A DNA stretch of 63,791 nt, filler included, from Octopus bimaculoides (taxonomy: Eukaryota), in NCBI RefSeq assembly GCF_001194135.2. It is 7 parts of 7 records of this genome, joined end to end, with 100 filler letters (N's around TTAATTAATTAA, not from the genome) between each part and the next. Parts side by side here need not be neighbours in the genome. Positions count along the whole stretch, not along the records: positions 1 to 25,031 come from NC_068984.1; 6 more parts are not named here. One strand, given 5' to 3'. The notes below the pieces were generated by a model. That model was given only the letters and a program-made list of their open reading frames with translations, was not told the DNA's origin and ran no database searches. A program made the translations under genes and the position numbers. Positions within the stretch are counted from its first letter, which is position 1, and the number at the start of each line of letters is the position of its first letter. Below are positions 5,464 to 21,797 of this stretch, one piece after another.

Positions 5464-5700
5464 CAACACACAAATCTCTGCAAGGAAACGCAGGAATTCG
5501 ACCTGTGCATTTCGGAAAGATGAGGCCGCAATAAAAGCCCATCAGTTGTTTGGAACATCTTCGATCCAGTAAAGGTTCAACTACAGTTCGAAAGCGTTGC
5601 CGAGCAGCAGTCTGGTTATCGTCACCAAACAGATTTGGGAAAAATGTCTGAGAATAACCTAAAGATATACAGGGATGAAACACCAACGGTTGGCAGCGAG
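5464..5700 (-). CDS. Exon encoding the N-terminal ~2/3 of a Frizzled cysteine-rich domain (CRD)
   Basis: tttacag|CT CGC TGC...TGT GTT G|gtaggt. 237 nt, phase 1-1: RCQPLVFHPCISLGYSQTFFPNLFGDDNQ...RRCSKQLMGFYCGLIFPKCTGRIPAFPCRDLCV. Matches Fz hallmarks C-x-P-x5-C, GY-x-x-T-x-x-PN, C-x4-P-x-C and PCR-x-LC. The exon with the last Cys residues was not found. Confidence 0.9.
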
Positions 5701-5769
5701 CTGTAAATAGAGAAATGAGAAAAAGAGCATTAACATATAAATTAATGGTTTCTAATTTAGACAAAAGGT

Positions 5770-5920
5770 TGGCAATATTGAAGTCGATACCGCCTATCCC
5801 AGTACTTCACTGGTACTTTTCGACCCTGGGGGGATGATTGGCAAAGTTTATCTCGGTAGAATCTGACTTCAGAACATAAAGCCTTTTTTCGACGATTCTG
5901 CCAGCTCTCCGCTTTTACTT
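5770..5920 (-). mobile_element. Degenerate SINE family-1 copy
   Basis: gtcgatac...cccagtac...cgaccc...aaagttt...tctgacttcagaac...gattctgccagctc, as in other copies. Confidence 0.65.
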
Positions 5921-6609
5921 GTAAATTTATGGCTAAGACTTAAGGGGTTATTCTTGTCGAAAACATCGGACTGATGCGAACATGCTTTTATGACGGGAAC
6001 TAGTAATGTAAACTATCCTGCCACTGACGACCGGATTACTGCTAACCTATGCTCTAGGAACAGCTCTAGGAACAGCTCAACAGTGTGTCTCTTAGATTAA
6101 ATAAATGGATGTGAATTAATAGATCAAGAATTCGATTTTCTTCTAGCCCATCCTCCAGGCCCGACTCTTCGACATTACTTGTTTTCAGTTTTATAATTTA
6201 ACACTAAATAATAGCAATTAATGTAAAAAAAAAAAATTGAACAAAACAAAAAACGAAAATTTTCAAAGCTTTTTTTGATTATTAAAATGAACTGTTATGA
6301 TTTACCATTTTCCCCATAATATATCCGGTACTAGTAAAAGCTCTGTTACTCAAAACATGGGCTTATTTCATTTAATGGTTAATCCATCTCTGCTGCTAGT
6401 ATCAATGTATAATCTTTCTTTCTGGTGGCCGTCAAGTAGTTATTATAAACTAGGACAAATAAGCAGAGAGGAGAATATTTCATTCAAAATATACAATAGA
6501 AACTTAGGTTTAGGTGAATCTGGTCTTCTTTTATTAAATTACGATTAGTTAAATAAAACAATAAGTAGCAAGTAATATCTAAAAAGGTTTTTCAGTCTGT
6601 CTCATGGCG

Positions 6610-7420
6610 AGAATTGAAAAGGCGTTGCCCCAGAAGATGGCGAAGGAGATGCGCTGGGACAAGCACTGTGACTCAAGGGGCTCGCGCGAATGGATAGCTA
6701 TATCCGCCCCTATATCGGGGAGCAGGGATGTGGTCTAGGGGCCGAGAACGCCGGAGGTATCCCCTGCAACAAGTTCGACCACAAATCTGTCAGAGAATCG
6801 CCGATACTTTGACGGTTTGCCATTCTCGACTTGATGAGCAACTGAACACACCAGGTTGCCGTTGGAAAAGGTATCTCGGCATGTGATATTCCAGATGAGG
6901 GGCNNNNNNNNNNNNNNNNNNNNNNNNNNNNNNNNNNNNNNNNNNNNNNNNNNNNNNNNNNNNNNNNNNNNNNNNNNNNNNNNNNNNNNNNNNNNNNNNN
7001 NNNNNNNNNNNNNNNNNNNNNNNNNNNNNNNNNNNNNNNNNNNNNNNNNNNNNNNNNNNNNNNNNNNNNNNNNNNNGGAAAGCTACCAGCACTATAATGG
7101 AATGACAATGGGTGGAGGCCGACATAATTCACATTGGTTCCGCAGCGATACTTGCGAGGCTCAGATCTAGAGGCCAAGCTTCAGGGAAACACTGATGCAT
7201 AGACAGTCGCAACTAAGCAGAATGCCAGTCGAGAGTGATGGACTGCGTTGAGCCAGGCTTTGCTGTGAGACTGGGAAGCCGAGGGTAAACATGCCAGACG
7301 GTGCTGGTCAAGCCGGCGCACCAGCCAGTCCGAGTTCATACTGCACTGGATGGCGTCCTTTTTGCTTTGGAGTGACCAGACGTTCACAAAGCGGATAGAG
7401 AGATGGACGTCGCAAGGCGA
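6610..7420. repeat. GC-rich interspersed-repeat fragment, probably retrotransposon-derived (family not identified)
   Basis: Abrupt GC/CpG-rich island in AT-rich intron, interrupted by an N gap. No motif confidently recognised. Confidence 0.35.
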
Positions 7421-8339
7421 AGGCTGGGGAGGAAAAAGAACTGCATTTATAGATCTATCTCGAAATGAGAGAATGAAGAAGGCGTTCTGTTGTGTAACTG
7501 TGCTACCAGTTGTTGCTCTGTATATTTTGTCTCAAATTGTTCTTATTATGTTTAATCCATAATTTTAGCAGGTAATCGTTCATATTTGTGTGTTTAATCC
7601 TCATCGAAAACATCGAACCGAAGTAGGATACCATGCTATACTGGACACAACTGAATTACCTATCTTTCTAGCGCTAAGTTGTTGACAAATTATCCGATGA
7701 AATAAATGAAATATTTATGAAGATAAATTTGTATTGTTAAAAATACAGATAATTTGAAAAGAATAGAATTCGTAATACACAATTTGAAGAAAGGAAATGT
7801 CAATCGCTCAACAGAGTATAGTATACTCACTGATTAGACATAAATATGAATAATTCGCGTCTTGTCAGTGGTCCTACTCCATATATTCGGCCTCAAATTA
7901 TGTTTATGATATGTAAAGACCGTTTATATCGCTGCTGTAATTTAATGGTAGTATTAGTGGGAGGCATGAATTCCAAGAAGCTGATTTACCTTGGCTATAT
8001 GATGAAAGCATATTTTCATGCTTGGAATAGTAAAAAGTTGAAGAATAATGAATTACGTCAGAGAATAAAACGTTTTCTTTTTTCATTCTAAAATACGAGA
8101 GATGACACCGAACGTGTTTCATCTGTTTCAGAATTCCTCAGTAGAAATTCGGACTCGCCGTTAAAAGTCAAAGTATTAAGGAACGAATAACTAGGTAAAT
8201 ATACTGAGTAGATATTCTGAATAGAGATGTAACGTAAAGTGAAGATAAAATTTGGTATGTTTTTGTGCTGGCAGACTTTTGATGTGTTGCACTGTTATGA
8301 TACTTCAATGATATAGTATTATGTTCAGAAAGCTTTTAC

Positions 8340-19552: not shown

Positions 19553-19917
19553 GCGCCCATATGTATGTATGCATGGATACAGTTAGAAGGAGAAATGACC
19601 GTTTGGAAATTTTGAATAAACAAATGGTTAGCCATCATGCATTTTGCTAAATGTTCCTTGTTTTGTTTTGTTTTATTATATAAAATGTTTTATTCCTTTA
19701 TTTTATTTTATCTTATCATTTTTTGTTTGTTTAGTAGTTCTTTAAATGGGGACTCAAAACGCTTCTATGTGAATGTCTGTTATGTTTTGATTTCATTAGT
19801 TTATTAAAATTTTGTTTTTTATTATGATTTATTTGAATATTTTTAAGTATCTGTGTGTGTATGTGTGTGTTATAATTTGTTGTTGGCAGAAAGTTTGGCG
19901 AATCTGACGTCACTTAC

Positions 19918-20109
19918 GTTGGCAGTAATTTTCACAGTCTATTTTACGAATGAACGCGACGTCTGCAACTCTGTGTAAGTATTTAGAACAGGTGTAAAAC
20001 ATTGTAGTACGGCATACGTTGCGTCGGTTATCATAAAACCATATCTGTCTGAATTTGCCTTCGAATGAGTCGCACCGCATGTCAGCGTAGATCACTTTTG
20101 TATCGCATT
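19918..20109 (-). CDS. Internal exon encoding atypical Kunitz/BPTI-like domain B
   Basis: ttcgtttacag|AA TGC...TGC CAA C|gtaagt. 192 nt, phase 1-1: CDTKVIYADMRCDSFEGKFRQIWFYDNRRNVCRTTMFYTCSKYLHRVADVAFIRKIDCENYCQ. Same Cys spacing as exon A and 25/62 identical residues by hand alignment. Confidence 0.88.
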
Positions 20110-20384
20110 CTGTAAACGAATAAAAAGAATAAAATATATATATACATATATACACAATATTACAATTTACATACACATTTATACAGTACATGTATATATA
20201 TATGTATGTATGTATGTATGTATGTATGTATGTATGTATGTATGTATGTGTGAGTGTGTGTGAGAGAGAGGGTGAAAGAGAGAGAGGGAGAGAAAAACAG
20301 GCATATCAAATACTATACAACATAAATTCAATATTTCTCGAAAGCTGGAATGCCATTCAAGGAAAGTACAGGCTGTTTCTCTCG

Positions 20385-21165
20385 AGGTAAGAGTACAGTC
20401 ATGGACGCGTGTTTCTGCCTCTATAAGAGTCATCAGCATGACAGTTATCTCATCCTAACTCCAGCAGCCGAGGGACTTAGACATATACAAAAATTAGTAG
20501 AGCATACTTATGGCCTAAGCAATTTTCGTAAACAGAAATAACTCAAAGTGGCCAGTGGCATATGTTTGAACAACATAAACAAAATACAGGTATACCAAAT
20601 ACCATACAAGAACTTTTGGCTAATTAAAATTATCTCCGCCTGTTGAAGATACACGTCACAATCACCAAATGATGATTGAGACCAACACCATATAGAAGAG
20701 ATAATCTTAAGAATCAAGATTTCTCTAAAGTAAGCATGTCATTAAGGATTAGGAAAAGCTTATTTTTGTTTATTTACACAAATTTTGGCGGCCATAAATA
20801 TGCTCTATTCTTTTGGTGTATCTAAGTCCATTGGCTGCTGAAGTTAAGGTAGAACGATTGTTATGCTGATGACGACTATTGAAGCAGAAACATATGCGTG
20901 ACTGTTCTCTTATCTCCAGACAATAAGCTTGTCTTTTTCCACATTGGCATGTCAACTTTGGAGAAACTCTTGACTCTTGATATTATCTTCCATTGTCCTG
21001 CAGTGCTGATCTCAACCGACATTTCGTAATTGTAACACATCCACTACAGGCAGAGATAATTTTAATAAATGAAGATTCCTTGTTGTATACTATTTGATAT
21101 ACCTGTATTTGTTTATGGTGTTCAAATATATGCCACTAGCACCCTGAGTTATCTTTATTTTTACA
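20385..21165. repeat. Diverged ~370-bp inverted, circularly permuted repeat pair between the two Kunitz exons
   Basis: 20385-20545 (A) resembles the reverse complement of 20770-20905. 20545-20760 (B) resembles the reverse complement of 20915-21160. Confidence 0.75.
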
Positions 21166-21605
21166 TGCAAATTATGACAGCAACTCGGGTTTTGTGTTCA
21201 GGCGAAGTATTTACTGATTTTAAGATAAAATGAAGCATAATCATATTATTTAAATATCATGTGTCGAAGAATACTCATATTACAGGACATGTTTGAAAGT
21301 AATAAATGAAAAATTACGAGAAAATGAGATATCTGAATAAGTGTGAAATTGAGAGCAGTAGTAACTCAGGACTTTTATCCTGATAAATTTGGTTGAGTCA
21401 CTCACACTGTGAAAATTTATTATGGCTGTATAATATAAAACAATGATGATAAACAGGCAAAGTAGCGAATCTTTAACTATTAACCTGAGATTTTACATTG
21501 AGGTTGTTATGTGTGGCTCCTTCTGGAGTAAAATCCAATGCAAAAAAAAAAACTAAAAAGAAACAGGAAAAGGAAAGAAAAGAAAAAGTCATCTACGTCA
21601 CTTAC

Positions 21606-21797
21606 TGATACACTTTTTTTCGCAACGGGAGAGAGAAATGAAGGTGACCTCTGAAATTCGATTTTCATACAAGGGACAAGTGTGAAAAGGGATTTGTCGA
21701 CAGGTGCGAGAAGATTTGTCGTACATCCAGGCGTCCCGAGGGCCTCCTATCCACCAGTCACATCGCATGTCTCCAAAGATGTATTGCCGGTTACACT
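21606..21797 (-). CDS. Internal exon encoding atypical Kunitz/BPTI-like domain A
   Basis: Minus strand: tatatttcag|AG TGT...TGT ATC A|gtaagt. 192 nt, phase 1-1, open: CNRQYIFGDMRCDWWIGGPRDAWMYDKSSRTCRQIPFHTCPLYENRISEVTFISLSRCEKKCI. Six Cys, W-x-Y-D before C3 and F-x5-C-x3-C ending as in Kunitz. Not in the ORF track (no ATG). Confidence 0.85.

Follow-up and report, generated by a model that had tools for sequence, protein, structure and literature searches.

The gene and its exons

Here we describe a gene on the minus strand of a stretch of Octopus bimaculoides DNA (the window, 63,791 nucleotides including the filler between its joined parts) that encodes two Kunitz-like modules followed by a Frizzled-type cysteine-rich domain (CRD). 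The gene lies in the first segment of the window, positions 1-25031, which consists of 25,031 real bases with a G+C content of 36%, is rich in microsatellites, and contains seven runs of N in addition to an artificial end. This segment corresponds at 100% identity, N runs included, to approximately 83,017,442-83,042,472 of chromosome CM046604.1 in assembly GCA_001194135.2 (locus L011 below). The gene is LOC128247600, and its product, XP_052823136.1, is an "uncharacterized protein" of 311 amino acids. Exons 2 to 5 fall in the window, with the following features in the order in which they are transcribed.

21798-25031, minus strand: intron 1, 3' part; exon 1 (signal peptide) lies about 10.1 kb past the right edge of the segment
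21797-21606, minus strand: exon 2, 192 nt, phase 1-1, Kunitz-like module A; AG at 21799-21798, GT at 21605-21604
20110-21605, minus strand: intron 2, between the Kunitz-like exons, defined from the splice sites and collinear with O. sinensis
20109-19918, minus strand: exon 3, 192 nt, phase 1-1, Kunitz-like module B; AG at 20111-20110, GT at 19917-19916
8481-19917, minus strand: intron 3, 11.4 kb, with four N gaps (10904-11271, 12967-13937, 14465-14683, and 17835-18562) and a decayed retrotransposon
8480-8340, minus strand: exon 4, 141 nt, phase 1-1, linker; AG at 8482-8481, GT at 8339-8338
5701-8339, minus strand: intron 4, containing the N gap 6904-7076
5700-5464, minus strand: exon 5, 237 nt, phase 1-1, Frizzled CRD from Cys1 to Cys7; AG at 5702-5701, GT at 5463-5462
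1-5463, minus strand: intron 5, 5' part; exon 6 (CRD Cys8 to Cys10) lies about 1.5 kb past the left edge of the segment

The lengths of exons 2 to 5 are all multiples of three, and when spliced together these exons read CNRQ...CRDLCV, identical to residues 26-278 of XP_052823136.1. Exon 2 is an exact match to residues 25-89 of that protein, and exon 3 matches residues 89-153 of the protein P0001 at 98% identity (tblastn). Residues 1-24 and 279-311 had no match in the segment by tblastn (word size 2, E up to 10). On L011, where positions 1 and 25031 of the window are 45174 and 20144, respectively, exon 1 occupies 10001-10072 and exon 6 starts at 46685. A six-frame Pfam scan of minus-strand open reading frames (ORFs) of at least 32 amino acids returned only the Fz exon. 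Exon 6 (46685-46780 of L011, 48161-48256 of the O. sinensis locus L001, and 25124-25222 of a further locus, L002) ends in a split codon (...PTS G/GTAAAT), and a seventh exon downstream supplies the last residue and the stop codon; the end of the mRNA of the cuttlefish Sepia esculenta, ...PRTV and a stop, fits this splice from exon 6 to exon 7.

A first-pass annotation, made from the sequence alone, had proposed a single minus-strand gene with phase-1 symmetric exons and consensus splice sites, and most of this structure stands. Its coordinates for the three domain exons (21797-21606, 20109-19918, and 5700-5464) are exact, AG and GT dinucleotides and phase 1-1 are present on all four exons in the window, and its junctions from 21606 to 20109 and from 8340 to 5700 are exact as well. 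Its junction from 19918 to 19293 has to be abandoned: four gene models and the Sepia mRNA all join 19918 directly to 8480. For the middle exon the proposed donor at 8340 was right, while an exon near 19293 occurs in no model or mRNA, the real exon being 8480-8340. We rejected the sequence near 19293 as coding; O. sinensis matches it at 96.7% identity, but neither the Argonauta locus nor the Sepia mRNA contains it. The intronic stretch at 19100-19400, with 96.7% identity to O. sinensis compared with about 91% for other aligned noncoding sequence, may be a conserved noncoding element or simply local variation.

Orthologs, transcripts, and exon skipping

The concatenated exon peptides matched O. 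sinensis LOC118763056 (311 amino acids) and Argonauta hians Ahia01_000947200 (315 amino acids), both with 100% query coverage, and the 90% cluster additionally contains the O. bimaculoides protein and an N-terminally truncated O. vulgaris model. Exon order, phases, and split codons at the junctions are the same at the O. bimaculoides, O. sinensis, and Argonauta hians loci, which represent three species and two genera.

In Sepia esculenta, a 326-amino-acid protein (P0008) with signal peptide, modules A and B, linker, and CRD is encoded by one uninterrupted ORF of 326 codons, found on 1.2- to 1.8-kb contigs from five separate transcriptome sequencing (RNA-seq) runs that were assembled independently. 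Three of the five are larval or juvenile RNA-seq runs (PMC10571815, PMC9538352). Because the genomic gene has kilobase introns, these contigs must be spliced mRNAs. The Kunitz and Fz exons thus do not belong to different mRNAs, and the exon order and phases shared by the orthologs, together with the Sepia mRNA, bear out the proposal of one gene with a single product. We regard it as virtually certain that the gene is real, single, and conserved and that it codes for protein.

Another Sepia contig, the sixth (L003, 902 nt, run SRR25158158), has an ORF for a 198-amino-acid protein composed of signal peptide, linker, and CRD. Compared with the long mRNA it lacks 384 nt, which are precisely exons 2 and 3, with cuts at the boundaries of exons 1 and 2 and of exons 3 and 4, and the codon at the new junction changes in frame from C/AA (Gln) to G/AA (Glu), as expected when phase-1 exons are skipped. 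Judging by this one contig from one run, the cuttlefish gene is alternatively spliced such that its Kunitz-like exons are skipped.

The O. vulgaris model, CAI9721139.1 (P0007), carries the name "Protein MIG-1 a" after a Caenorhabditis elegans Frizzled and has no seven-transmembrane (7TM) region. It starts with MNV, lacks the signal-peptide exon, and is two residues (VT) longer where exons 4 and 5 meet; it is likely both mis-modeled and misnamed. Since the protein has no 7TM region and ends eight residues after Cys10 of the CRD, this automatic name is misleading.

Kunitz-like modules

Modules A and B both have the cysteine spacing C-x10-C-x19-C-x7-C-x17-C-x3-C. The six cysteines are invariant in every copy, with intervals of x10, x19, x7, x17, and x3 compared with x8, x15, x7, x12, and x3 in Kunitz domains, where the cysteines pair as C1-C6, C2-C4, and C3-C5; for A and B the comparison is of cysteine number and spacing as read from the sequence. 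Kunitz_BPTI (PF00014) is the top-ranking Pfam family in seven of seven copies, which score as follows relative to a gathering cutoff of 21 bits.

Copy A, O. bimaculoides: 20.2 bits, E = 6.8e-4, below the cutoff
Copy A, O. sinensis: 20.3 bits
Copy A, Argonauta: 23.8 bits, the only copy above the cutoff
Copy A, Sepia: 18.0 bits
Copy B, octopus: 11.0 bits, E = 0.52, below the cutoff
Copy B, Argonauta: 13.0 bits
Copy B, Sepia: 14.0 bits

In the full-length protein the Kunitz_BPTI score is 14-15 bits, and databases therefore list Fz alone. A profile-profile comparison by hhalign with nine classical Kunitz domains gave a probability of 75%, a P value of 2.7e-5, and a score of 27.4, which was reached in 0 of 400 cases in two column-shuffling controls (means, 9.6 ± 2.0 and 10.0 ± 2.3).

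An AlphaFold2 model of domain A, built from a seven-row alignment of A and B copies, has a predicted local distance difference test score (pLDDT) of 70 and a predicted template modeling (TM) score of 0.51. It consists of a long β-hairpin (strands 17-27 and 32-40), a short inserted helix that corresponds to the insertion between Cys4 and Cys5, and a C-terminal helix (56-63), and so shows the twisted β-hairpin and following C-terminal α-helix by which the Kunitz fold is recognized. When this model was compared with the PDB by Foldseek, all of the top 50 matches were Kunitz-fold chains (TM scores of 0.41-0.80, probabilities of 0.75-1.00, and E values of 0.017-0.3), among them MitTx-α, the top match, and boophilin, TFPI, BPTI, ShPI-1, dendrotoxins, and conkunitzin. 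Searches of PDB sequences gave nothing significant: phmmer with the A+B tandem returned only the mitoribosomal protein mL53 (E = 0.6, a chance match), and a profile of the Kunitz-like modules returned only the collagen VI α3 Kunitz domain, at nonsignificant E values of 1.4-2.6.

Likeness to Kunitz/BPTI domains thus includes six cysteines in the same order, the retained core motifs [WY]-x-[YF]-[DN]-x5-C and F-x5-C-x3-C, a modeled β-hairpin and C-terminal helix, and PDB matches to the collagen VI Kunitz domain (profile) and MitTx-α (Foldseek). The differences from BPTI (x8/x15/x7/x12/x3) are the wider spacing (x10/x19/x7/x17/x3), the extra short modeled helix between Cys4 and Cys5, and an acidic P1. 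Taken together, A and B are very likely genuine Kunitz-fold modules that are strongly derived.

The canonical reactive loop, with a P1 Lys, Arg, Leu, or Met in GPC[K/R][A/G] and a YGGC motif, is absent. At the residue after Cys2, equivalent to P1, octopods have Asp in both A and B, and Sepia has Gln or Glu; GPC[K/R][A/G] is replaced by DMRC[D/E/Q] and YGGC by F[H/Y]TC (FHTC or FYTC); and there are loop insertions of 2, 4, and 5 residues. Residues of this kind at P1 and in the loops argue against trypsin- or chymotrypsin-like inhibition, and classical protease inhibition by A or B appears unlikely from the sequence. Noninhibitory or retargeted Kunitz domains include collagen VI α3 (C5) and the Kunitz-type channel toxins (dendrotoxins, conkunitzin, and MitTx-α). 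The binding-loop segment is nearly invariant here, which suggests contact with some conserved partner.

Frizzled-type CRD, linker, and termini

Exon 5 alone matches the Pfam Fz family (PF01392; gathering cutoff, 32.1 bits) with 56.3 bits (E = 5.6e-15) over profile positions 1-79 of 110, well above the cutoff, and for O. bimaculoides the score of the full-length protein is 58.3 bits. Ten cysteines, seven encoded by exon 5 and three by exon 6, make up the CRD, and all are invariant in Octopus, Argonauta, and Sepia. Among solved structures the best match is FZD4 (E = 2.4e-14), followed by FZD6, FZD7, FZD2, FZD10, FZD1, FZD3, FZD8, and FZD5, and after these Frizzleds by sFRP3 (3.5e-7), sizzled (about 1e-5), and ROR2 (0.4). 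Frizzled receptor CRDs (FZD4, FZD6, FZD7, and FZD8) are thus the closest in sequence over Cys1-Cys8, with 30-35% identity to FZD8/FZD4, but in contrast to the receptors the protein here lacks both the linker-plus-7TM region and GFxWP.

The last part of the CRD is compacted. Cys8 to Cys10 spans about 19 residues compared with about 30, the interval between Cys8 and Cys9 is 8 residues compared with 16 in FZD8/FZD4, GFxWP is absent, and only P-L is kept of the first groove segment. An intact lipid groove as in Wnt-binding CRDs, including the GFxWP region, is accordingly missing, as judged against the FZD sequences and the groove residues of the Fz8-XWnt8 complex. In the complex of Fz8 with XWnt8, the GFxWP segment is part of the groove and reportedly supplies several of the lipid-contacting residues. 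Wnt binding by this CRD is plausible, not assured.

The linker encoded by exon 4 (GSFMPLVNKELFAVRIHFYITMLKIILDTTEVSISSGSIEETAPIT) is conserved, partly hydrophobic, and present in all orthologs and in both Sepia isoforms; neither Pfam nor a hidden Markov model search of 1.84 billion representative proteins matched it to any family. We rejected it as a transmembrane span, as its mean Kyte-Doolittle value is about 1.1 over 19 residues (calculated by hand) and Arg, His, Lys, and Asp are present. A full-length AlphaFold model from a two-sequence alignment is unusable (pLDDT of 33.5); it places a low-confidence helix at 162-182 in the linker.

At the N terminus, MTSLGWKLFLLMMVFSNSCHG followed by LPPE resembles, by inspection, a signal peptide that would be cleaved, and at the other end the protein stops eight residues after Cys10. 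No NTR domain was found in Pfam, no 7TM region is present in any ortholog of 292-326 amino acids, and no glycosylphosphatidylinositol (GPI) signal was found. From the lack of these three features we infer a soluble secreted protein.

Selective constraint and distribution

Identity between O. bimaculoides and O. sinensis is 98.7% at exon positions and 91.3% at aligned nonexon positions. In the comparison of Octopus with Argonauta, synonymous divergence is saturated, and nonsynonymous divergence (dN) is 0.055 for A, 0.038 for B, 0.185 for the linker, and 0.144 and 0.352 for the two CRD exons; the order against Sepia is the same. With the lowest dN in A and B, the Kunitz-like modules are the most constrained part of the protein, and B (exon 3) is its most conserved segment. 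A and B are tandem duplicates with about 40% amino acid identity, and the duplication predates the split between octopus and cuttlefish, since each of the two Sepia modules groups with its octopod counterpart, A with A and B with B.

When residues 25-199 were compared exhaustively with 1.84 billion representative proteins by HMMER, no relatives outside the family were returned, and no classical Kunitz proteins. Word-indexed homolog searches likewise found Octopus, Argonauta, and Sepia only and no relative in squid, Nautilus, or noncephalopods, groups in which the databases cannot establish absence. Across these searches the gene is known only from coleoids (Octopus species, Argonauta, and Sepia), consistent with the lineage restriction that the first-pass annotation had suggested. 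Strong purifying selection across the octopus-cuttlefish split, expression in cuttlefish larvae, and modular splicing together mean that the gene very probably has a function.

Sequence context, assembly gaps, and repeats

As the segment is identical to CM046604.1 with its N runs, the gaps are part of that assembly. The gap-free O. sinensis chromosome CM016862.1 (L001) is collinear with all of 1-25031, with nucleotide identities of 85-94%. Five N runs lie in the range of the gene considered here (6904-7076, 10904-11271, 12967-13937, 14465-14683, and 17835-18562), and both flanks of all five map to unbroken sequence of O. sinensis with their order and orientation kept; for example, 5020-6903 maps to 40804-38941 and 7077-8728 maps to 38798-37146 of L001, so that the flanks of 6904-7076 are 142 bp apart there. 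When the orthologous protein was searched by tblastn against the gap-free O. sinensis locus, only the known exons matched, none of them in the equivalents of the five gaps. The gaps are thus intronic, conceal no exon, and leave the reading frame of the gene unaffected.

Every N run is bordered by microsatellites of the (TG)n, (TA)n, or (TACA) type, for example, at 4220-4540, 10750-10900, 12935-12966, 14314-14464, 17778-17834, and 18563-18700. These probably caused the assembly gaps, and they give rise to long spurious ORFs rich in Cys, Val, Tyr, Ile, and His in a mechanical ORF list. Low-complexity repeats at 24686-25031 (plus strand) and 8564-9548 (minus strand) similarly yield poly-Asn and Val/Ala/Ile-rich ORFs with no sign of coding. 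The 79-N gap at 4923-5001 is bordered by identical 262-base copies (4661-4922 and 5002-5263), each of which maps to both places in L011; most likely the duplication is not biological and was produced in assembly or in closing the gap.

Within intron 3, a decayed retrotransposon at 15562-17095 (plus strand) contains three reverse transcriptase-like ORFs in different frames and a weak match to Pfam RVT_1 (E = 0.0015). The block that includes it (14958-17360) is found at the orthologous place in O. sinensis with 88% identity, and the insertion is therefore older than the split of the two octopus species. Sequences at 19392-19507 and 1181-1269 each have two matches in the Argonauta locus at 74-79% identity and are probably old interspersed repeats common to octopods. 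About 8.7 kb past the annotated end of the gene, outside the window, an enoyl-CoA hydratase/isomerase family gene (Pfam ECH_1/ECH_2) occupies 57861-59106 of L011 on the minus strand; a functional link between this neighbor and the Kunitz-CRD gene is not obvious.

Discussion

Our findings describe a predicted octopus gene whose product combines two atypical Kunitz-type modules and a Frizzled CRD. The combination that the first-pass annotation had read from the exons is upheld by domain searches, fold tests, and the Sepia mRNA. In HMMER searches of the kind it called for, Fz exceeds its cutoff, and Kunitz_BPTI is the top family for A and B in octopus, yet at scores below the cutoff. Frizzled-type CRDs occur in a small, well-cataloged set of protein architectures, and those named in the first-pass annotation do not include a secreted CRD that follows Kunitz-fold modules; among secreted Frizzled-CRD proteins the architecture is a new variant. 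The literature searched by domain combination and by accession held no paper that describes a Kunitz plus Frizzled-CRD architecture; the gene itself already exists as a predicted, uncharacterized RefSeq/GenBank protein. RECK, with Kazal motifs in place of Kunitz domains, offers a precedent for the union of a CRD with modules of the inhibitor type (PMC6338448).

The interpretation that best accounts for the whole is one conserved gene whose product acts as a secreted Frizzled-related protein with Kunitz-fold binding modules, and we consider this reasonably probable. The product of about 311 amino acids has, in order, a signal peptide, Kunitz-fold A, Kunitz-fold B, the linker, and the ten-cysteine CRD at the C terminus, and it would act extracellularly, much as secreted Frizzled-related proteins or soluble ectodomains of Frizzleds do. 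The CRD may capture a Wnt or another hydrophobic or lipid-modified ligand, and the Kunitz-fold pair, lacking a canonical inhibitory loop, would most likely provide a second protein-binding surface, with matrix components, receptors, and unusual proteases as candidate partners. Phase 1-1 coding exons and the exact skip of the Kunitz exons in cuttlefish mean that the gene can make two forms, of which the long one would be bifunctional and the short one, with exons 2 and 3 skipped, would consist simply of linker and CRD. In its narrower version, that of a coleoid-specific secreted modulator related to Frizzled in which the Kunitz-fold modules are alternatively spliced binding modules and not classical inhibitors, this interpretation has, on the sequence evidence, not quite an even chance of being right.

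Such a protein would resemble sFRP1-5, sizzled, and crescent in its signal peptide, its ten-cysteine CRD, its small soluble form without a transmembrane segment, and its presumed capture of extracellular ligands. In contrast to the sFRPs, which have an N-terminal CRD and a C-terminal NTR domain, it has no NTR, and its CRD is C-terminal, where it follows the Kunitz-fold pair and a unique linker; the CRD is also nearer to FZD4 than to sFRP3 or sizzled and is shortened between Cys8 and Cys10. RECK, which has an FZD-like CRD and Kazal motifs, serves as a receptor for WNT7 and also inhibits metalloproteinases (PMC6338448). The likeness is that of an extracellular protein in which an FZD-like CRD is combined with inhibitor-type disulfide modules, in RECK in the service of Wnt (WNT7) signaling, whereas RECK has 971 amino acids, is GPI anchored, and contains cystine-knot motifs, EGF-like repeats, and Kazal rather than Kunitz domains (PMC6338448). 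The CRD is the only RECK domain in the octopus protein, which has no Kazal or EGF match in Pfam, and no sequence relationship was detected; the likeness is one of analogy only.

The alternatives differ in what they make of the individual parts. That the Kunitz-like and CRD exons are separate neighboring genes fused by prediction programs might be suggested by the 11.4-kb intron with four assembly gaps and a retrotransposon fragment between them and by the fact that octopus has gene models only. This is effectively refuted by the five independent Sepia esculenta assemblies with one ORF from signal peptide through CRD and by the exon order, phases, and junction codons shared among O. bimaculoides, O. 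sinensis, and Argonauta hians, and neither exon block has a signal peptide or stop codon of its own. The modules might instead be working protease inhibitors that couple ligand binding by the CRD to local extracellular protease inhibition, by analogy with RECK, which unites a CRD and inhibitor-type modules in one protein of the Wnt pathway (PMC6338448). Support for such coupling comes from the Kunitz fold itself, as indicated by Pfam ranking, hhalign, and AlphaFold2 with Foldseek, and from the near invariance of the D-M-R-C-D/E/Q segment between paralogs and across about three lineages, which suggests a functional contact surface. But the P1 residue is Asp in octopods and Gln or Glu in Sepia, never Lys, Arg, Leu, or Met, the GPC[K/R][A/G] and YGGC loops are absent, and there are insertions of 2, 4, and 5 residues. 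Kunitz domains with such loops are, in general, noninhibitory or differently targeted. We consider working inhibitors unlikely, and the "protease regulation" that had been proposed for this gene is doubtful for the same reasons.

Many molluscan Kunitz-type proteins are components of matrix, mucus, defense, or venom-type secretions, and the octopus protein could likewise be a secreted component of this sort in which the CRD binds a non-Wnt ligand or is structural. This would agree with the compaction of Cys8-Cys10, which forms part of the Wnt-lipid groove in FZD8, and the missing GFxWP, with a CRD that evolves faster than the Kunitz-like modules, and with a family limited to one lineage. However, the first two-thirds of the CRD is clearly of the Frizzled receptor type, with FZD4 ahead of sFRP, sizzled, and ROR2, and the transcripts come from whole larvae or juveniles, not from a gland-specific library. 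A role of this kind is, in our estimation, rather improbable. The binding of Wnt or lipid that had been suggested for the domain is not assured.

Several observations count against our preferred interpretation of a secreted Frizzled-related protein with Kunitz-fold binding modules. Given the shortened Cys8-Cys10 part without GFxWP, Wnt binding may be weak, altered, or lost. Both copies in the window (A, 20.2 bits; B, 11.0 bits) fall under the Pfam threshold, the AlphaFold2 model of domain A is only moderately confident, its Foldseek E values are 0.017-0.3, and PDB sequence searches with the Kunitz-like domains were not significant. The signal peptide was judged by eye, the short isoform is known from one contig of one run, and transcript evidence comes from Sepia, with octopus represented by gene models alone. 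The literature searched held no paper on the protein under its LOC, XP, CAI, or UniProt identifiers.

Our results also lead us to a more speculative version, which we think doubtful at present, in which a secreted Wnt modulator arose in coleoids when two duplicated and highly derived Kunitz-fold exons became linked to a CRD of the Frizzled receptor type, and regulated skipping of the Kunitz exons would switch it between a simple CRD decoy and a bifunctional adaptor that links a Wnt or lipid ligand to a second partner.

For annotation, these findings illustrate that standard Pfam thresholds can miss both Kunitz-fold domains of a protein, one ortholog of which was misnamed as a Frizzled receptor (MIG-1). 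If Wnt modulation by this protein is true, cephalopods would possess an extracellular regulator of their own for a core developmental pathway, and RECK would be joined by a second protein in which a CRD and modules of the inhibitor type occur together. If the switch between decoy and adaptor is also true, it would add a lineage-specific layer of Wnt regulation that is potentially relevant to development specific to cephalopods.

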